Positions 38,755-53,139 are shown, numbered from the whole stretch's first letter. The stretch is DNA of 56,861 nt, filler included, from Bipalium vagum (GCA_037834085.1; 3 parts of 3 records of this genome joined end to end with filler, not necessarily neighbours in it), one strand, 5' to 3'. Numbers and translations are program-made. The notes: generated by a model from the sequence alone, not told the origin.

Positions 38755-41700
38755 ATGAATCTAGTTAAAATTTTTAATGATGCTGGTGCAACACTAGGAA
38801 GAATTATCCAGGTAAAATGAAAATAAAGTTTTTAAATTTTAAACAATTCTAAACATAGCAAGCGGAAGAAGTATTTTTAGATGTACCAAAAACGAAATAT
38901 AACGACGAATACTTAGAAAATATCAAGAAAATTGATTTTCTGATCATTTTAACAGAAAGATTAATAGCGGATGCAGAACAATTTTTAAATCCTAATGCTG
39001 GTTATAATATTATAATTTTTATTTATTATTTAATCGATTAATTAAATTTATTACGAGTTTTGTCATGTAACAGATACGTATTTCTAATAGAGTTTTGGAT
39101 TATTTTTCATAATTCTTTAAAATCATATTCAATGTTGGAAGAATATCCAGTTTCTTAGAAAATAGTCTTGCAAAAATTCGTTATAAAAACCTCTTTTTCT
39201 TTAAATTGAATTTTAAATAATGATAATATAACGTCGATTTAAATTTTTATTAAAAAATATTCACAAGAGAAAATCATTTAAAAATTTGTAATTCTTTCTC
39301 GTTTAGTGAATGTTATATTTATATTATTAATTTAATAAATGGACTAAATCTTATAAGCGATTTATAGTTTTTGTGTAAGTTATTTACAGTCATTGTAAAA
39401 AATTAAAAAAAAGAAATTATAAAACTTTAACGGTTTTTTATTTTAATATTTTCTGAAACATAAATGACATTGTGGAATCTAATTAATATCAGTTTATCAA
39501 TAAAAACAAAAATTTTAATTTTTATGGATTATTGAAAAATTACATACAAGATTATTATATGAAAATATTTTTCAACTATATACAAATTAAGCATGTAATA
39601 TAGAAATTCAGTTACAATATAGAATATTTTAGAGGTCACAGAAAGATGGATACCTTTAGAAGAATTTGGAAATACTCTTCAAAATCCAGTTTTAGGATTG
39701 AAAGACTTTTCAGAATCTTTCAGTAAGTTCTGTTTTATATTTCTAAAAAATGTCATTAAAATTTTATTATTGTCACTTCAAGTAGAAAATCATTTAATAA
39801 AAAGTAGTCGGAGTAGGATTTCGTCTGATTGTGTGGGTTTACTTTTGGTGATAATAAGTTTAATTTATAAAAATCAATATAAAATTCTCATATGACAAAC
39901 ATTCATAATTTCTTAAAAATCCAGCTTCTCAAGAAAATATTAAAATAAATTTTAAAAAATTAAAATTGCACTTCTGTTAATTTAAACTTTTAAAATTTAC
40001 TCAATTATTTTCTATGGAGTGTTAAATCTGTTTAATTTTTTAAGAAAATGAAAATTATTTTAAAATTCTTTTATTTTAAAATTATTAATTATGTAAATTA
40101 ATGTCTAATAGACATATTAAAGATAACAAGTAATAAGAATATTCAGTTAATTGAAGTTACGGTTTTATAACAGATATAAACAATGTATTTTTGTTTAAAT
40201 TCATACAGAACAACTTTTCATATCATTAAAACAAAAATTTTTAGATGATGATCTGTTCAAAGCGGGAAAATATCAGAAAAAATTGGCATTCTCGATGAAA
40301 AACTTCAAAGATAAATCAATTGAAAAATATGTTCAGAAATTGAAAAATATTTTAGAAGTTGATTTGAAAAATTTCAAAGTAAATTTTTTGAAATTTCATT
40401 TGGTATTAATTAAAAATGAAACCTGTTAATTTAAGCACCCAAAAATTTTGTTAATAAAAATTAAATATTGATTTTTGCTTTCATGAACTCTTTATAATTT
40501 GGCATCACTATATTTTGGGAAAAATTTTCGGTCCCAGTGGTTTCAATGTATATAAAACAAAAGGTAAAAATAATTTATTAAAAAATTTTGCGACAAAATT
40601 TTGTTTTACATATTATGTATTAGGTTGGTGGAAAAGAAAGTGCCGTCTTCGAGGTTTAACTTTAAAACTATAAGACAAACATGTAACAAAACTTTTATTA
40701 ATTAAAATAACAACTATTCGATGGTTCAAGTTTATTTATTTCAGTCAAATAAAAGTCTGGTTTTCTGAAGGTGACAAATTCGTTCTGGTTCTTGAAGATT
40801 TTTTCCAGAATGAAAGAGGTCAGATGTTTGAAAAAATGATAATCAGTAGGCGAGAGGTCCAGTGAATAAGAGAAGTGAGGTAGAGTTTCACATTCGAATT
40901 TGTGCAACTTGTGCATCGTAATTTTTGAGATGTATGGTCTTGCATTGTCGTGCAGGATGATTGATCTTTTACTGTTGACCAATCCAAGGTTTAAACGTAG
41001 AAGCTTATGGTTCATTTAATGGATTTCTTGGAAATATTTCCCCGACAAATCGTTTCATTTTGTTTTATGAAGCTGAAGTATATTAAAACCCATTCGTGAC
41101 TATTAAACCGCCACTCTCATCTATTTTTGGTGTAAATTCGACTTAGAAAGGTACCGTGGAGATCGTTTCCTATTGTTGTACACAAGCCATTTTTCGTCAC
41201 ATGTTACGATACTTTCAAGATATGTTTTCTTGAAAAAAAGAAGAGACGATGAGACTTCTAAACGGTATTATTTTTGTTTGTATGTCAATTCATGTTGTAC
41301 CAATTATTCTAATTTTTCACCTTTTTTTTTAATGATGCCCTACTGCTGTAAGATCAACAAGTAGTTCTACAAGTTCACGTGTGGATTTTCCACGGTCAGA
41401 ATCGAGTTCAGCTTTTAGTTGATCGTTATCCAGTGCTATTGATCAAGTTCCGTGCTTCTCATTTTGCGTACTTTCATCTCTGGTACAGGATTTAGAAAAC
41501 CACCATTGAACTGTTCGTTTATTAGTAGTACCTACCTCGAAAGGAGCATTAATGTTACAGTTGTCTAGCCTACTCCAAGGCCATTTTTAAATAAGTATAA
41601 AAAGATTTCGATTTCTCATCTTGCTTGAAATGATTTCTAGAGGCCAAAAATAAATTAAAAAGTAATTTAAATCAAATTTAATTAAACAAAATATAAGCTT

Positions 41701-44700
41701 CAAATTGATATAATGATTAATACGAGGGTTCTAACAAAATTTCTCGTAGTAAAAATTACTGGCGACTCAGAAAACCTTTATTAGAACCCTCGTATTTATA
41801 ATTAATACATTTAAACAAAAATACAAAGGATTGAGCATTATTAAAACGTTAATTTCTTTTGCACCAACTTAATATTACAGTTTGATGCAAAATTATAACA
41901 TTACAGCATTTCTTTGGTTATTATTAAGTTATTTTAACAAATTTGAAAATATATTTATTTAATATTATTACAACAAATTATAAGTTGGTTTGCAGGTATT
42001 TCAGAAATGTCTACATTTTTATTTTAGTTAGATACAGTTTTGGTTAAAAATGATTGGTGCAAAATTATAACCTCACATCAGTTTTTTTAAAATAACGGGT
42101 TTACATATATTTTTTATTTATATCTATAACAATATTAACCCTAGTATTTGGCTTTTCCTTCCTTAAAAAATTAAAAATTCTGCTTGGAGTGCTGTCTGAT
42201 TGTTTTCTTAATTCTTCAATTGAAAGATTTTCTCATGCTTTGTTGATTTCTATTGATGAAATTGGAAAATTTCTTTCCATCAGAATACACATTTCTGGCC
42301 ATACTTTACCTATTCTAATATTATTATATTTTATTAATAATTAATTAATGAATTACTTTTCCTAAGCTATCAGTAATAACTTAGCAAATAAAATTTTAAT
42401 TATAATAACAATTTATTCTGATATACTTATTGATTCTAATAGACAAAATTAATAAAATTGATTTATTGACAGTTTTAAAAGTAAATATTTTTAAAAACAA
42501 TTAACATAAAAAGGGACATGATTAATATTAATGAAATTTAAATAATTTATTAGAAAATTTTCAAGAATTAAATTTTTTAAAATCATAATTGTCACAATAA
42601 AATTAATACAATCATTATTATTATTAATTAAAATAGTGTTCAGCTGATTGATTGGATATACAATCTTACATATCTAATTTAAATGTATGATCTCAATGAA
42701 TGATTACAGGTCTAAAGAAACCATATCTTTTAAATGAATCTTTAAAGAATGTTTTCATATCTATGTCTATCAAAACATGGTTATATTTTGCAAGACGCTT
42801 TCATTGAAAAAATAAGAGAAATATTGCTTTATTAAGTTTTATCTTGAAAATATTTTTGTTTTACAGATTAAAGTACTTTTCAGTGCCTTTGATCTGATCA
42901 AGAAATAGACGACCTTTATTATTTTTATTGTTATTAAAATGAATATTTAATAAATTGAAATCAATAAATGAGATCTAGGTTTGTACTGTGAAGCATAACA
43001 AAATATTTTAAGTTTACTGAATATATTCACAAAAATTATTATTATTATTATTATTGTTATTGAGTAATCAAGATGGTTCCTAAATTCATATATTTTTTCA
43101 TTGTTGAACATACAGAGATATTGTGTATGTTAAAATGTTATTGTTATCTCATATAGGCATTATAACAACCTTTAACAAAAAGAATTCAATGCTAATATCA
43201 ATAACATCAGAAATACCTTTACAAGTTAGTTAACCGAACCAAAACCACTTTACCTTAATAATATTATTTGTTTTAAATATAACTGATTATTTTCAATAAT
43301 TTGATTCATTTTCCTCAAAGAATTGTCTGAAAGTCCAGAATTTTCAGTGGGAAGTTTAATAAAGAGTTTTGATCTATGACTGTTTTTGATTAGTGTATTC
43401 AGTTTAGATTCATTAACTTTTAAGAATTAACGAAAAGGCTTTGGTAAACAGGACATCATCTGTCTTGTTCAACAGATTATCTATTTTTAATTTTTGCAAT
43501 AAGCATTTCTAAATAGAGATTCAGATTCCATGAAGGCGTACAGAGGTTTTTTGATAAAATGATGATTGATTAAAATATCACAATATCTTTATCTAAATTT
43601 TTAAAAATTAAAATCTCCGAATGATATTTGCACATCCAATCAACTAAATATTGGTCCATAACACACTATAAATAAATAATGGGACATTTCTTTAATGTTA
43701 CAAAAAAAAGATCAAGATATTTAATAAAGGTAGAGAGATTTGAAGTCGTATTAAAATCCTTTATTTATAAAAAATTAAGAATTGTTTGACCCCAAACCTG
43801 GATATGTAGTGTAATCTACGGTGAACATCCAGTACTCGTTTTTATATATATTATTTAAGTTTTCGCAAATTTTGGGTACTAAAATTCTTATTATATACAC
43901 CTCGCTACAAATCTGTCAAAATCTTAAATTGGCCGAATTTCAGGAAATTTTCCCGATTATTACCTTTTCAACAAAATTCACGTTCTTATCTCGAAATTAG
44001 TTCAGTATCTTTTTCGCGTAGTGAGATGAGCCTAGATCAGGCAAAAATACGTCATTATGGTGCTTGATGAATGACATCAACTGATGCTTAATGCATTCAT
44101 TGAGGTACACCTCAATGTTAATTGCCTGCTTTGCCAGGACAAGAATTGTTCGAAAACAACTAAAGATGAAAAAAAAATCATATCAATACCTTTTTTTCAT
44201 ATTATGACTTTAAATGTTGCCTAATATTATCCAACGTGGTTGTCATTTTGTTTGAATAAGTTATTTAGAAATATTAAAATAATATAAACATAATATATTA
44301 TAACTATAATATGAGGAATTAACAGCCCTACCGGAATTAATTTACGGATCCCATAAATTATAATACATATCTATTTAAAGTCTTTTTTAATGTGGTTGGA
44401 CATCAATTAAAATTATTTGCATTAAAAAATCACTAAACAATTTCAATTGAAAGTAAATTAAATTAAGAAAAGTAAAAGAACAATAAAGATAAAACACTTA
44501 TTTACGAAACTTTCTTAATAATAAAAAATATAATGCTTAAATTTTAAGTCAGTTTTAGCATAAAATAAATGTTTTAATGCTTCGTTGGACTACCTTTAGT
44601 GATCTATATCCCAATTTTTTTTGCATTGACATTGCACTTTTCTCTAGTGTTGATTTATGGACCCTTTCCAATACCCTGAAATAGTGTCCTAGTTCTTTTA

Positions 44701-47700
44701 AAGAGTTTTCCTTCAATATTTACCAGTATTATTAAATACCCCAAAGGATCCAAGATAACCAAGGAAATATCACAATATTTCGATCTTGAGTTTTATTAAA
44801 TTTTAAGTTTAAAAATGACTAAATTTTGCTTTTAATTTACAGTTGCATTATCTTAGATATTTTGAAGTTATGTCTAGTTTAGTAGAATATATATTTTCAT
44901 TATTATGTCAATTATAGGAGTGCGTAAATTATTTCTGGTTGTGCTGCATTACTTAAATGAAAAATAAAATTCGAGAACAATATCAGATGAAGAAATGTCA
45001 AAATATTCATAAATTTTTAACAATATTTTATTATAAAAAAGACTTATTTAACCAGGACGAAGAAGCCGCTCTAGAACACATTCGACTTGATCATGATTAT
45101 CTAAAGAATCGGGTAGACAACGCCTTCACCAGTGCCGGTAAAGAGGCCGTAAGTTAAATTCAGATATTATTGTAAAGCATAGCGGAGACTGATTTCTTTC
45201 TACCGACAGCTCGAAAAAGAATATGAGAAGACAAGAGCTATCTTCGAAAAGCATTACGATAGTACAATAGAGCTTTTCAAATCTGCTGACAGTTATTTTG
45301 TAAGCTTTAGTCTGAGTCTTTGGTGTCATTAAATGCATTAATATCTTTATTAATATAGACGTTACATCGCCAATTGTTAAAGGAATTTATAGATATTGAA
45401 AGAAATTACTACAGAGAGTGTGAAAAGAATTTGACAATTCTTTTAAGAAAATTACATTGCGGTATTTTTTATTTTTAAATTTTTAAAAAAATATTATTTC
45501 ATATCAAAGAATTCGTTTTGTGATTTTCAATGAAAACTACGCATTTTTAAAGAGCAAAAAAATTAAAATAAGAATAAATAAGTAATTAAATAAATAAAAA
45601 AGATAAATAATAAAAAAGTATTAACAAATCTAAGTTAGTACATTTCTTTGCAAAATTGAAATTTTCAGAGAAATGTATATAATTTATTTTTTTAAAGATA
45701 TTTAATGTAGATTTTAATATATTTTTTTTCAATTAAAAACGCAATTATTTTCTTACCAATCTGTAACATTTATGGTGTGACAATAAAGTTCTGGGACTTT
45801 AGCTGTACAAGATCAAAAGTACATAATCAAATGATCATATATCGTTACTCAAAGTACTCATCATTGACTTGAATACACGTAGTACATTTTTTAAACAAAG
45901 CAGTAAAACTTTTTAGAAAGTTCTCTTAAGGAATTCTCTTCAGTTTGCTTGCAACATTGGTTTAAATAACCTCAATATCTTGAAAATTTCTTCCTTAAAG
46001 TATGGCTTTCAGCTTTGGGAATAGTCAGAAATTTGTTGGAGATAAATCCGGTGAATATGGTGGATGGTTGTTCATCGTAAAATTCATTTTACGATTTTGT
46101 AATTTGAGTTATAATAATAGTCCTGGAACTTTATTGATACGCAATGTATCTTTATATTTATTTCTTGATTACTGATTATTTAGGATTAACAGTTTTCAAA
46201 AAAAAATCAATAAAATCTTTTTTGACACAGTCATACTTCTTTCTCATTAAAGTAAATATATATTTATTATATAATATAAAATTTTAATTGAACCAAATAG
46301 ATTTTATTTGATTATTTTTTCATATTTAATTGGATATAATGCAAATGTATTAATAATTTCTTACAATTTTCAATCGCGCGCTATTAAAAATTTAATTCTT
46401 GAAAATTAGAAATTATTTTTATTCTTATTTAGACTCATTCAAAATTACATATGATTTACAATTTGATCACGATGGATTTATTAGCACGTCCGATGTCGAC
46501 GAAAGAATACGGAGGAAAAAAATTATTGAGCTTTCTAAACTAAGTGAAAATCCAGAAATGGAAAGTAATAAATTTTCACCAATAGATAAGCACGGAGGAC
46601 ACTTTGAAAAACCCTTTCAATACGATAATGACGTCATGGACAGTGAAATATCAGTTCGAAGAATTAACGGCTCTGTTGAATGCAGCTCACAAGGTTTTCC
46701 CATTGATGGTTAGTTTAGTATTATTATATATATTTTTATTATTTATTATTTTTAATTAATATTTATTATTTTCACCAGAAGTAAGTCAAATTAAGTCATG
46801 TAATTATTGGAATGAGTGAAAACTTACGATTTACTGATTTAACAGTCCTTTCAATGAGAAAATTTTTGAGAAATTTAAAAGGAAAGGTTTTCAGAAGAGC
46901 TTAGCCAATCTTCTGAACCAATTGACAAGAAACTGAATAAAATTCCCGATTCAAAAAAATTATCTAAAATTGGTTTTGTAAATAAAAATAAGAAATTTAT
47001 TATTACTAGAGAAAAATTATGTTGTATATTTTTTAGTTACACATTTAAAATCACTTAAAAAAGAAGTTGAAAATAATTCTTATTTATTAAAATAAAATAA
47101 AACTAAATTAAAATGTATAATGCATGGATTGAAAATTATGAAAAAGAAATCACCTTGCAATAGTAACGATTCAATAAATTGAAAGAAAATCTTATCAGAA
47201 TTATTTTATTTGTGAATATTTAAAATGTCTTTTAATAAATTAAATTTTTAATAAAATAAATATTAAAAATTTTTTAAAAGTAATAATAAAATCTAAATAT
47301 TACTTAGTTAAATTTTCCAATCATGTTAACGTTTTAAATTACCAGCAAATTATCGGTAAATTCCAAAAAAATAATAACTAGATTTATTAAATCTTTATAA
47401 TATTTTAAAAAATATTTAACATATTATTTTTTTGATGTAAAATAATAAAAACGCGAGACATTGAAACGCACTAAAACCATTTATTTCTTTTGGTACTGGA
47501 CTGAGTTTTTACTCAAAATATTTATCTGGATATTGTGATTTATTTACTAATTTTAATAGTTTAAATTATATCTAATTAACGTTAAAAATTGATAAATAAA
47601 CAATTTTAGTATGATGAGAATTAAAAGGTTTCTATTTAAACAATAATACAATTTTGAAAGGTGACATAAAATTTGACTGGAAAGTTTCAATTAAAACATA

Positions 47701-50700
47701 TCCATGAAAATTGACAAATTATTAAAATATAAATGAAAAATAAAATAAATTAAAAAAATAATTAAAAAATAAGAGAGTAATTAAAATTTAGAAAGTGATC
47801 ATCACGTTATTACTAATGGAATTTATAAATCATATCCTTTACGCGTTGTTATGGAAAATGAAAATGAAGGAAAAGCTCTGGATAGTTCTGGTTAGTTATT
47901 TTTATAATATTTATTGATTTATTTTAAGAATTGATTAATTTTCACTCTATTAATAATGTATGTTAGATCATATAAGGTCGTAAATTCGATATTAATGGTT
48001 TTTCTGATTTACGATTGTTATGTATATTACCCCAAGAATAATCTCACCTAAAAGTTTTTTATTTATGTCATCCTAAAAAACATTTCTTTTTATTCAGCTT
48101 AATAAATCTTTTTATGATATCGCACAAAAGTTCATCATTTCCTTTTGGTTTGTGTAATTTGAGGATATATTTGATTTTTTCATAAGCTATAAAATCTTTG
48201 ACATGACAATTTTAAATCAATCAATAAAAAAGCCTTTAATTAAAGGTAACAAGGTTAAAGAAACTTCACTTTTTATTTATAATTTTGCAACGAAGAAAAG
48301 TTAGAGGATTTGATTATACCTTTTTTTACTGTCTGTATAGATTTAAAAATTTTTCTAAAGAGTAAAATAGTGACTTGACAAAGAAACCCTTTACTGTAAA
48401 GATTTTAATTTGTGACGAATGAATTTTCATCCCGCTGAAGAATTTCCCAAGAAAGAACACAAACTTAATCTTCATCGACTAAGCATTATTTATTAAGAAT
48501 AAAAGCTATTACATGAATATGAACTTAATCGACAGTTTCAAAAATTCATTGAAAATCTGAGACTGATTATTGATAATTTGTGAATATTTACAATTTTAAA
48601 TTTAATTTTTTATCATCACTTAAATTGCAAAGAATTTTAAAGGTAGACAGATTTTCTTAATGTTCTTTCTAAGTACTGTAACTTTCTTTTTAGCACAAGA
48701 TAAATAAAATTTTGCTGACTTACTTAACAAGTCCATCTCTTTATGATTCTAGAATATTTTAACTTAACATTTGTTTATTTAATGATCTTTCTAACAACTT
48801 TTGAAGTGTTTCTAGAATCAACAAATGATCATATATACTAGGGTGTATCAAAAGTCTTTTCCTATAAAACAACATTTATTCAAATGTACATAAAAAAGAA
48901 CAAAGGATGATTATTAATCTTCGAAATATAGTCCGTTGTTTTCAATGATCTTAAGCCATCTTTCTGCCAATTGTAGTATCTGTTAAAAATACCATTCCTT
49001 GGGAAAACTCACAAAAAGCCTGTTCGACCTCTTCAAACCGTCGACCCCGAAGAAATGCAGCCATAGAGCGAAATAAGCCATAATCTAAAGGGGCTTCTGT
49101 ATCGTGGATGTGGAAGTAATTGTACTCCATCCATTTTCTCAAGTTCGGCTGTAATCAATGAGATCGGCGCGGGGCAGCAATATCCTGTTGTAACAGATCG
49201 CACTTTCTGTTACTTTAAAATATTATTGACACGTCCTAACTGTTCTGCGTACAACTCAGCATTCACTGAGGAACCTGTAGTACACAGTTTTAATTTTAAT
49301 TTTAAAAAATGAATGCGTTTTTTCATTAGGGTTCATTGCAAAAGAAATAATTATTTTATCAAAGTTTTATTAAAACAAATTACTTCAAGAAGACTCATAA
49401 AATACAACACATTAACTTATTATTAAACGGTAACCATCCATATTATTAGGTTTTAAGATTAGGAAAAGAAATTTGAACATTTTAATGTTTATTTTTACAT
49501 TTTCAATACATAATATTTAATAAGCAAAATAATTATTTCTTTTTATTTACTTTAGCAAATGCATCATCTGGAAATGATGATGAAGAAGAACATTTGGGAA
49601 AATCGACTGTTGTCTTGACGAAGCATGAGATAGAATCAGAAACTCCTGAATTACCATGTTAACTTAAAATATTTTTTTTAAATTAATAAATAATAAATAA
49701 AAATAAAATTTTACCATTAATTAAAATTCATTGAAAAAATTAATAATAATAATTAATTTAGGCTTCCTTAAGATAGAGAAAAGTGAAATTGAAATCATGC
49801 CATTGGAGGAAGGTATAAAGATCGAAGATCCTGTGATGAAAGAATCTACCGAAAACCAATTTGAAGATACAATGAGTAACAAAAATATTAATATTTATTA
49901 ATAAATTATTTTATTTTTTATTTCTGTTGTGTGTTTATCATGTCTATAAACTCTGTGAATATTTAATTCATAAAATAAAAGATATTTTATAATTATAAAA
50001 TAACTTTTTTAAATGGTTATTTTATTAGTTAAAATAATAAAATTTAATCTTGAAAGGTTATTTCTTTATAGTAAGTTTTTTCTATATAATCTCTCATATT
50101 ACACTTTTATCGTTATTATTATTGAAATATTCCAGTGAGTTCAAAAATAAACTTTACTTGTGAAGATAACATTCAAGCGGAGACTGATCCAAGTGTACAT
50201 GCTCTTCCGGTCGCAGAAATTCATTTAATTGCAGACCATGCAGAAAGCGAACATTCTTTGGATTCTTCCAGTAAAATAATTCATTTCCAGTGAATTTCAG
50301 TAATGCCTGAACTTTTACATTTTAGATAAATTAGAATTGAATATCCATAGTGAGGCAGCTTTTGATCCAAATCTCTCGGAAAATCTTGAAACTAAAACTC
50401 ATGAACACGAATCGATCAAATTTGAAACTGATCTTCCAAGTGTTTCTTGTAAGTTACACTCTTTGTAAAAGAAGAAGAAACTTTTCATTATTAATATTGG
50501 AATATTTTAAAAAAATATCTTGAATTAATTGGTGTTATTTGTCTTTATATTAAATATATTTAATAAAAATATTTATTTATATATAAAAATAACACTCTAT
50601 TTATATAAAATTTTAATAATAAAAGAAATAAGAAATATTTTCAGTAGAACAAAGAAATAAAAATAAAACAAATTATTGTTTTAAGTAAACTATTTTGTTT

Positions 50701-53139
50701 TAATTGTTGAATATCTTAATTAATAAATTTTTTTTTCAAATATTTTAAAGAAGAAATTTTGTTATGAAAATACTTATTTAAACCTTTATTGAACCAATGT
50801 AACGGATTCGTGTATTTGTGTTTCTTTAACAATTAATGTCAAATGTTAACATTGAATCTTTTAATGCTCTTTTGGTCTTCAGTTTTAAATTACTTATATT
50901 TTTATTAATACTAAATGCTCATTAGTGAAAATGGAAAGCAGTTTACCTTCTGAGGATCAAAATGTCTTGTCAAAAGAGACTTTTTCAACTGATGTGCATG
51001 GTTCAACAAGTGATGAAAAAGCAAATGATATTCATCGTTAGTGAGATTGCATACTAAAACTCATTAAAAATATTTTTTTAATTTCTTAACTTTAGTAAAT
51101 GTGGCTCTGGATCATGCAAAACATGACGAACAACTGAATATAGAAGAGGCCACTGTACCTCATTCTGATCAAAAGTTGGAAAGTACAGCTCCAGGTATGA
51201 TATTTGTCTTCATTTCCGATTTTAAATAAATAATGAAAACTTTTTCTGGAACTGTATTATAATAAGGCTCAACGTTACCTTTAAGTCTTTGAATAAGCTT
51301 TTGAAATTATAGACATTTTAAATAAAGCTAAAATCCAGACAAATATTCATAATGAAATAAAAAATAAGAAAACATAATTCGTGTTTTACTTTGGTTGTTT
51401 TGTAAAATTACAAAAATCTTGAAATATTTTTTTCAGAAAACGAAGCAAATATTAATCTAACTCTTCAAGCTGATTTACATGTGGACCAAAAGCTTGATAC
51501 TGAAGGAGAAGGTAATGACATTGTCTTACAAAATAATTTTATCAATTTTATTTAAGGTACAATCGAATGAAATTGTTTAAAAAATAACAAATTTTTCAAT
51601 TTTAAAATTTGGTTTTCATTTGTATTTTAATAATTATTTATCAAAAAAAATTATTTAGACCCAAAAAACAGCACGAAAAATAGCGATATTATATTTTTTA
51701 TACTGAAATATATTTATATACCCAGGCGTTTTTTTAAAATTTTCAGCAATTGGCCGCAGCTCTTTGGGTGAAAAACAGTTTCATTCTCGACTTAGAGATT
51801 TTTTTTGTGCTTCCAAATTTTAGTGACGCTTAGCACATACCCTGCTCTCCAAAATAGACCATATACTGTAGTCTATCTGGTTAAGATCCAGGGAGTATGG
51901 CGGTCATTCTTGAGACGTGATAAAATCCGGAAAATTGGATTTGCACCATTCCTGAGTTTATTTGGCCTTATGGGCTGGAGTGGAGTCTTGTTGAAAGATC
52001 CATTCTTCGTTTATAAAATGCTGTTTGGACCAAGAAAGTAATACAGATTCCAATATGTCCCGTCGATATACTTCTTGGTTGATTTTCACCCCTTATCCAC
52101 GAAAATTAGAGAAGTTTTGCCACTTGCACAGATACCACCCCAGGCCATGACAGATTCTGGATTTTGGCGGTCTTCCATAGTTTTGGAGTTCGCAGTAGTC
52201 TTTGGTGACCATATCCTATCGTTTTGGTGATTATGGGATTGTCCGATGGTAAATAACTTCTCATCTGAGAAAAAAATTAGCTCCCAGTGCTGATCTGCAC
52301 CCACAGTTTCAGTACTCGACATCTTTGGAGTCTTACTCATCTGTTTTCATCCGTTAAGAGCTAAACTTTTTGGAACTTGTAAGGCCTGAGCTGCAGCTCG
52401 TTTTTTGCTATCATTCAAACAGATTAACGTTTGAGCCCAGTCTTACTGGCGACTTTTCTCATAGAGAGTCTGGGATTTCGCTTGATCCTCTTATTAATAT
52501 TTGGCGATTGGAAGAGATATTAATTGTCCGTTTCCTTCCACTTCCTGGACGTCGACCACTATGGCCAAATTCTTTGAATCGCTAAATGTCGTCAGAGACT
52601 TTTTGTTTTGGGACATTCAACAATCGACTAATTTCACTTAAACTTTTTCCGGAAAGAAAAATCTCAAAAATTACACTAAATATGATCAATATTTAAAAAA
52701 AGAAAAAATCACAATATTAAAATGTGCCTAGATTTCAGTTGGATTTTTAAATAAAATTATCCAGATCAATATAAACTATATCGATGAGTTCGTAATGCTG
52801 AAGGATTTTTGATTTTATTATGGAAAAAATTTGTGTGATACAAATAATTTTAAGAATGCACCCAATATCGAGAGGTACGTTATATTGAGCTTTAAATGTA
52901 ATAATAATAATAAAAATTTTCAAAATACTATTCATGAAACGATACAATACATTCTTTCTCTTTTATTGTGATTACCTTTAGAAGGCAAAGACTTATCTAT
53001 ACATTTGGGGAAAACTGATGATAAGAATGACATTCCGAATCCGAGCATTGAGGGAAATGTTGTTCAAAGGAATAAATTTGGTTGGAATGGTGATTCTGAG
53101 AGATCTAAAAAGGATAAGACAGAAGACGATAATAAATGA
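38755..53139 (+). CDS. SH3GLB1: Endophilin-B-like N-BAR domain protein lacking SH3, with a long acidic low-complexity tail; 17 exons, ~666 aa
   Basis: Exons: 38755-38811, 38859-39000, 39633-39722, 40245-40378, 45056-45148, 45210-45299, 45359-45461, 46433-46708, 47792-47890, 49556-49657, 49762-49875, 50136-50270, 50326-50448, 50926-51036, 51096-51194, 51437-51511, 52982-53139. All introns are GT-AG; total 2001 nt = 667 codons. The N-terminus MNLVKIFNDAGATLGRIIQQAEEVF..KT..EQFLNPN and the segments LFKAGKYQKKLA, LEHIRLDHDYLKNRV and LLKEFIDIERNYYREC are colinear with the endophilin B BAR domain. AATAAA near 53233 follows the stop. The symbol is family-level only. Confidence 0.82.
40620..41872 (-). 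mobile_element. Near full-length degenerate mariner (DD34D) with both TIRs
   Basis: TIRs TTAGGTTGGTGGAAAAGAAA and TTTCTTTTGCACCAACTTAA, TA-flanked, ~1.25 kb. IVTCDEKWL, ILHDNARPY and FSYSLDLSPTDYHFF motifs. Confidence 0.9.
41721..41794. mobile_element. ~70-bp mini inverted-repeat element inside the mariner
   Basis: TACGAGGGTTCTAA...TTAGAACCCTCGTA perfect terminal inverted repeat. Confidence 0.7.
45773..46146 (-). mobile_element. Internally deleted mariner-like element with TIRs
   Basis: GTGTGACAATAAAGTTCTGGGACT and AGTCCTGGAACTTTATTGATACGC; internal HPPYSPDLSP..LFPKLK motif. Confidence 0.8.
48838..49290 (-). mobile_element. Mariner 3' fragment
   Basis: APLDYGLFRSMAAFLRGRRF and IIENNGLYFED* C-terminus; TIR-like TAGGGTGTATCAAAAGTCTTTT. 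Confidence 0.75.
51650..52690 (-). mobile_element. Degenerate maT/DD37D-like transposon
   Basis: FFSDEKLFTIGQSHNHQNDRIW..SVMAWGGICASGKTSLIFVDKG, FQQDSTPAH and PYSLDLNQIDYSIW motifs. Confidence 0.85.

Follow-up and report, generated by a model that had tools for sequence, protein, structure and literature searches.

A candidate N-BAR gene of Bipalium vagum with a predicted acidic tail encoded behind ten consecutive phase-1 introns

The DNA considered here comes from Bipalium vagum (GCA_037834085.1) and consists of 56,861 nucleotides, filler included, in which three parts from three records of this genome are joined end to end; this whole stretch is called the window in the following. The analysis concerns the piece at 37901-56861, which is very AT-rich, with a guanine-cytosine (GC) content mostly of 0.19-0.30 per 1-kb bin. 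On its plus strand, from 38755 to 53139, the piece appears to contain a single protein-coding gene of 17 exons, a reading whose chances we put slightly above even, and which would encode an N-BAR module followed by a long acidic tail, with no SH3 domain. The model was read base by base and recomputed, and it derives from the sequence only: it comprises 2001 nt, that is 666 codons plus a stop, of which 236 belong to the BAR part (exons 1-7) and 430 to the tail (exons 8-17). GT...AG borders are found at every intron; introns 7-16, ten in a row, are uniformly phase 1, and the frame is open throughout until it closes at the TGA of exon 17 (Table 1). The original prediction had described nine consecutive exons of 276, 99, 102, 114, 135, 123, 111, 99 and 75 nt, all flanked by phase-1 introns, and exactly these sizes were recovered, with AG/GT borders; the 666-aa model, with its tail of about 430 aa rich in glutamate (E), aspartate (D), serine (S) and histidine (H), was likewise recomputed with the same length and composition class.

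The tail exons were evaluated with a 3-periodic coding model, trained on exons 1-7 alone with an intron background, and the controls were 82 open frames of at least 24 codons drawn from introns. The tail exons score between 0.15 and 0.72 bits/codon, with the predicted frame being the best in ten out of ten, and nine of them outscore all 82 controls, for which the mean is -0.18, the standard deviation 0.18 and the maximum 0.23. The composition of the tail exons is also of a coding type: GC at codon positions 1/2/3 is 0.50/0.31/0.24, versus 0.43/0.24/0.28 in exons 1-7 of the BAR part, the two other frames contain 16 and 65 stops, and exon GC is 0.31-0.41 versus an intron GC of 0.07-0.33.

The borders of the tail exons are pinned by their stop-to-stop blocks, which exceed the exon by a few codons only. 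In every block the acceptor that was chosen is the first usable AG behind the upstream stop. It also has the top score in nine of the ten, and in the remaining block it lies within 0.1 of a higher-scoring AG inside exon 12, which is likewise phase 1. Chosen acceptors are phase 1 in all ten blocks, and the chosen donor is the best GT of its block in eight, the exceptions being exons 11 and 12. Since the chosen sites are the best or the first usable ones of each block, the phase chain is independent of free site choice; simple arithmetic gives a chance of (1/3)^9 = 5e-5 for nine lengths that are all multiples of 3. On these grounds the predicted exon series holds up as a gene model, in which exon 9 is the least secure.

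Two further splicing features of this region should be recorded. Exon 11 contains an internal alternative donor at 49813 (+), AAG/GTATAA, which is phase 1 and outscores the modelled donor at 49876; its use would cut the exon to 51 nt in frame. A candidate for an extra exon of 78 nt, phase 1 on both sides, is located in intron 8 at 46895-46972 (+), with a decent acceptor and a weak donor; it was rejected for now, its coding score of 0.06 being within the controls.

The 236 aa encoded by exons 1-7 resemble an N-BAR module, of the endophilin-B/P29 type. Queries of Pfam, of the PDB and of protein databases were made exon by exon. Exon 2 aligns with positions 12-56 of the Pfam BAR profile PF03114, with an E-value of 0.0012 and 19 bits, below the 28.5-bit cut-off, and exon 7 matches BAR_2 (PF10455) at positions 257-284 of 286, with an E-value of 0.065; the two matches are collinear and fall at the expected ends of a BAR domain, and the exon-wise scans gave no Pfam match for exons 3-6. 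The 18-mers of exon 1 have a hydrophobic moment of 0.58-0.64 together with a low mean hydrophobicity, as in the amphipathic helix of N-BAR proteins, and exons 1-7 fall on the folded side in the charge-hydropathy plot. By eye, an endophilin B-like character is seen at the N-terminus and in an NPNA motif, which is kept as an unconfirmed lead only.

A search with exon 2 among 1.84 billion representative proteins returned one credible relative, P0003, a 96-aa gene call on an 836-bp metagenome contig of the European Nucleotide Archive (ENA; assembly ERZ27256860). P0003 covers exons 1 and 2 of an orthologue, with the 45-nt intron between them read through in frame, and its identity to the two exons described here is 68-70%; in the comparison with exon 1 the start is shared and 15 of the 19 residues are kept. 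This alignment shows the predicted gene start to be conserved in some related organism, and P0003 points to the presence of a related AT-rich organism in an environmental or host-associated metagenome. For P0003 no further cluster mates or word-search relatives were found, and nothing was obtained from a scan of the Joint Genome Institute (JGI) metagenomes with the exon 2/P0003 alignment, or from an atlas search with exon 2. No endophilin was found by the exon 2 search of the 1.84 billion proteins or by the exon-wise search of the PDB. Three matches of exon 2 to repeat proteins were judged spurious, as short stretches were matched many times.

The predicted tail is made up of 420 in-exon residues and 10 junction codons, and its composition is dominated by E (12.6%), S (11.2%), D (9.5%), lysine (K, 7.8%) and H (5.0%). 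It contains 93 D+E versus 41 K+R (R, arginine), with a net charge of about -52. The charge-hydropathy plot places all tail exons on the disordered side, and exon 8 alone, folded by AlphaFold2 from the single sequence, gave a mean predicted local distance difference test (pLDDT) of 46.6 and one helix, which is weak evidence; the tail is probably mostly unstructured. The tail exons contain a dozen CK2-type sites and a single PxxP, and no clathrin-box, DPF/DPW, FxDxF, NPF or SH3-ligand motifs were found in them. Similarity of the exons to each other is undetectable: the best among 45 pairs has z = 3.6, and the pooled protein score of exons 9-16 (z = 1.16) was reached by 34 of 300 shuffles. At the DNA level the exon similarity reaches a z of 3.3, which was discounted, as it was obtained with a mononucleotide shuffle only, and a search for DNA repeats gave nothing but AT-rich low complexity. 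From the sequence, tandem exon duplication as the origin of the tail is neither shown nor excluded.

The absence of an SH3 motif, which belonged to the original prediction, was borne out within the piece both by regular expressions and by Pfam. Scans of 133 plus-strand stop-to-stop frames of at least 24 codons, at 45462-56861, gave no SH3 family at E-values up to 1, and the two SH3 signature patterns (ALYDY and GxFPxxYV) gave nothing relevant next to coding sequence. Conceivably the gene is a canonical endophilin B whose SH3 exon lies outside the piece, exon 17 being merely an alternative terminal exon: only 3.7 kb, mostly retroelement-like, separate the stop codon from the end of the piece, and SH3 exons shorter than 24 codons would slip past the frame scan. 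However, AT-rich DNA containing poly(A)-signal strings comes directly after the stop of exon 17, and the 133 frames and the surroundings of the coding sequence are free of SH3 matches as just described, so that this arrangement appears very improbable.

That the SH3 domain was "replaced" by the tail, as had been proposed, is instead a historical claim that goes further than the present data. Since the BAR part shares its layout of seven exons and about 236 aa with the BAR-only protein P29, a history in which the tail was added fits equally well, and addition of a tail to an already SH3-less, BAR-only gene is at least as likely as SH3 replacement. Echinococcus P29 is a 238-aa BAR-domain protein with seven exons and about 25% identity to endophilin B1 (PMC4031130), and its earlier mention as a BAR-only, endophilin-B-like protein of tapeworms is correct according to the same source. 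P29, which is annotated as endophilin B1, resembles the present BAR part in length (238 versus 236 aa), in having seven exons and in having no SH3 domain, the comparison being made by published description; its exon borders, deduced from the nucleotide and residue positions given in PMC4031130, fall near those of the BAR part. However, P29 stops just past the BAR domain, while the model described here runs on for about 430 residues.

Endophilin B1/Bif-1 (SH3GLB1) has an N-terminal amphipathic helix followed by a BAR domain, as is predicted for the model, and endophilins fall under the Pfam BAR profile to which exon 2 aligns; unlike endophilin B1, the model has no SH3 domain within the piece, and its sequence is very divergent. 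Amphiphysin/BIN1 and FCHo1/2 provide another likeness, since they too carry a disordered region, of about 400 aa, behind a BAR scaffold. Unlike amphiphysin, the tail lacks clathrin/AP2 motifs and a terminal SH3 domain and is far more acidic, with no sign of homology. As for the exons, in the human genome symmetric exons favour disordered regions, and the alternatively spliced symmetric ones are the most disordered (Schad et al. 2013, PMC3632108); the tail resembles such genes in that exons with lengths that are multiples of 3 would encode disorder, with in-frame skipping possible. The likeness to schistosome micro-exon genes that had been suggested proved superficial. Those genes have very short symmetric exons (from a few to about 36 nt) and a secreted product, whereas the exons here are of ordinary size, 75-276 nt, the N-terminus would be a cytosolic BAR helix and not a signal peptide, and no mutual similarity of the exons or other trace of tandem duplication was seen.

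Several observations weigh against the single 17-exon gene. Both Pfam matches of the BAR part are sub-threshold, and sequence searches of the PDB, for which exons 2, 4 and 7 and a two-row profile served as queries, returned only noise; as the PDB searches were blank, the BAR domain would have to be considered divergent. The disorder of the tail is read from a charge-hydropathy plot and one single-sequence fold, which are crude, and about 22% of the tail is I+L+V+F (isoleucine, leucine, valine and phenylalanine), so that parts of it may be structured. Relatives of the tail were sought through exon 8 only, in narrow searches (a length-limited word search, the JGI metagenomes and the atlas), and none was found. 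A search of sequencing runs for the locus gave a sole run, which is DNA-like and probably derives from the source sample, and no RNA run. To these points are added the frequency of bare open segments between AG and GT, the low score of exon 9 and the possible BAR-only product, which are considered below together with the explanations that they favour. What the sequence shows is the structure of the gene, its coding character, its composition and the lack of an SH3 domain within the piece; that one messenger RNA (mRNA) joins all exons, that exons 1-7 fold as a BAR domain, that the tail is disordered and how the protein works are inferred.

The join between exons 7 and 8 is the point at which the locus could come apart into two products or two units. 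The main product would then be a BAR-only, P29-like protein of about 241 aa, terminated within intron 7 by read-through or polyadenylation, with exons 8-17 belonging to a minor long isoform or to a separate gene for an acidic protein. Indeed, the donor of intron 7, GCG/GTATTT, is with its score of 3.5 among the weakest of the tail region, where six of the nine others score 4.5-6.0, and read-through of exon 7 into intron 7 (45462-45478) adds five codons, G-I-F-Y-F, before a TAA, giving a product of P29 size; with such a donor and such a stop, a BAR-only product is conceivable. The existence of BAR-only endophilin-B-like proteins with 238 aa and seven exons (PMC4031130), close to the 236 aa and seven exons of the BAR part, goes in the same direction, and intron 7 is AT-rich with many AATAAA strings; these strings, however, are expected by chance at its base composition. 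On the other side, the exit of exon 7 and the entry of exon 8, which has a strong acceptor, are both phase 1, and the frame of exon 8 opens 12 codons upstream of the acceptor without any ATG there, nor is there one in frame before the middle of the exon. Intron 7 contains no other plus-strand coding block, and it carries transposon remnants on the opposite strand. The split of the locus is regarded as unlikely, and the single gene is retained as the preferred model.

A different objection concerns the exons of the tail one by one: the tail may be in part an artefact of the model, with some exons unreal, exon 9 first among them, or with real ones missed, in which case the exon count and the statement that all of them are symmetric would change. 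Bare AG...GT open segments are frequent, as 97 of at least 60 nt in phase 1/1 (phase 1 at both ends) occur on the plus strand, and exon 9, at 0.15 bits/codon, falls in the upper range of the controls, below the best of them at 0.23. A further open phase-1/1 segment exists at 46895-46972, but its score is within the controls, and alternative sites are present in exons 11 and 12. Nonetheless, the coding scores of nine tail exons lie above every control and the predicted frame is the best in each of the ten, the flanking stops hold the borders within a few codons, and the exons stand out from the introns in GC. An artefact of this kind is considered quite unlikely.

If the single gene is real, a mechanism can be proposed for its product. 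The BAR part would dimerise and bind a curved, negatively charged membrane, and each dimer would carry two bulky, like-charged tails above the membrane. Steric and electrostatic repulsion of the tails would limit the dense packing of the scaffold and would favour curvature sensing or fission over stable tubules; with a net charge near -52 per monomer, the tail should in addition be repelled electrostatically by the anionic membrane and by the tails next to it. The tail could also bend back onto the BAR part, at its basic face, and so cause autoinhibition. Crowding by the tail is a reasonable proposal by analogy, and it is not a new principle: amphiphysin in its full length, or an N-BAR joined to the unrelated disordered domain of epsin (432 aa), drives fission by steric crowding, while the bare N-BAR stabilises tubules (PMC6363457). 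In the same study N-BAR joined to arbitrary disordered domains of 380-430 aa drove fission through crowding, and a splice variant whose disordered region is much shorter was discussed as likely to exert less steric pressure (PMC6363457).

The ten phase-1 introns would be the usual signature of disorder encoded by symmetric exons, and in-frame skipping is permitted by arithmetic only. In the boldest form of the proposal the symmetric exons would be true cassettes: their combinatorial skipping, together with a BAR-only form ending in intron 7, would give graded tail lengths on one N-BAR, and splicing would tune the crowding and the balance between tubules and fission. We consider this improbable. 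Both a BAR domain with a long disordered domain and symmetric exons encoding disorder are already known themes; as there are precedents for the architecture as well as for the phase pattern of the exons, the value of the locus is at present modest. What would be new, if the model is real, is the combination of a P29/endophilin-B-like N-BAR, the lack of an SH3 domain and of endocytic motifs, and an orphan tail of unusual acidity with ten consecutive phase-1 introns. If transcribed as drawn, the gene would be a natural counterpart of the artificial chimeras of N-BAR and disordered domains, and would offer a clean test of crowding-driven fission and of the role of tail charge; P29-type, BAR-only proteins would then be able to carry long extensions.

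Table 1. Exons of the candidate gene, with positions counted from the first letter of the window; phases are given as entry/exit, and the coding score as bits/codon.
Feature	Position	Strand	Length (nt)	Phase	Coding score	Description
Exon 1	38755..38811	+	57			Start codon; 19 residues, predicted amphipathic helix, H0-like
Exon 2	38859..39000	+	142			Putative first BAR helix; match to Pfam BAR PF03114
Exon 3	39633..39722	+	90	1/1		AG/GT borders, open frame
Exon 4	40245..40378	+	134			AG/GT borders, open frame; followed by the 4677-nt intron 4 with a mariner remnant
Exon 5	45056..45148	+	93			AG/GT borders, open frame; GC 0.49
Exon 6	45210..45299	+	90			AG/GT borders, open frame
Exon 7	45359..45461	+	103	out 1		Predicted end of the BAR part; weak donor GCG/GTATTT, score 3.5
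Exon 8	46433..46708	+	276	1/1	0.25	First exon of the tail
Exon 9	47792..47890	+	99	1/1	0.15	Donor CTG/GTTAGT, score 6.0; weakest coding score of the tail
Exon 10	49556..49657	+	102	1/1	0.59	
Exon 11	49762..49875	+	114	1/1	0.49	
Exon 12	50136..50270	+	135	1/1	0.49	
Exon 13	50326..50448	+	123	1/1	0.48	
Exon 14	50926..51036	+	111	1/1	0.32	
Exon 15	51096..51194	+	99	1/1	0.72	
Exon 16	51437..51511	+	75	1/1	0.70	
Exon 17	52982..53139	+	158		0.39	Terminal exon; TGA 53137-53139; 3' flank AT-rich with AATAAA motifs

The introns of the candidate gene also harbour remnants of mariner-type transposases, all on the minus strand: 40698-41015 in intron 4, about 45900-46075 in intron 7, 48951-49142 in intron 9 and 52086-52340 in intron 16. 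The first of them contains a 105-aa frame about 50% identical to fragments listed as PF01359 (Transposase_1), "SETMAR" or "Mariner Mos1" from many animal groups, among them bat, bee, Strongyloides papillosus and hookworms; for the other three the identification was made by eye only. Pfam searches with the frames at 40698-41015, 48951-49142 and 52086-52340 gave nothing, and neither Rfam nor a tRNA scan returned a match in the piece. Immediately downstream of the gene, at 54104-55762 on the minus strand, there is a region that looks like a retroelement remnant, with no Pfam match; it has a raised GC of 0.37-0.41, contains open frames of 122, 82, 62, 55 and 50 aa, and includes a (CCT)n stretch at about 54690-54725.

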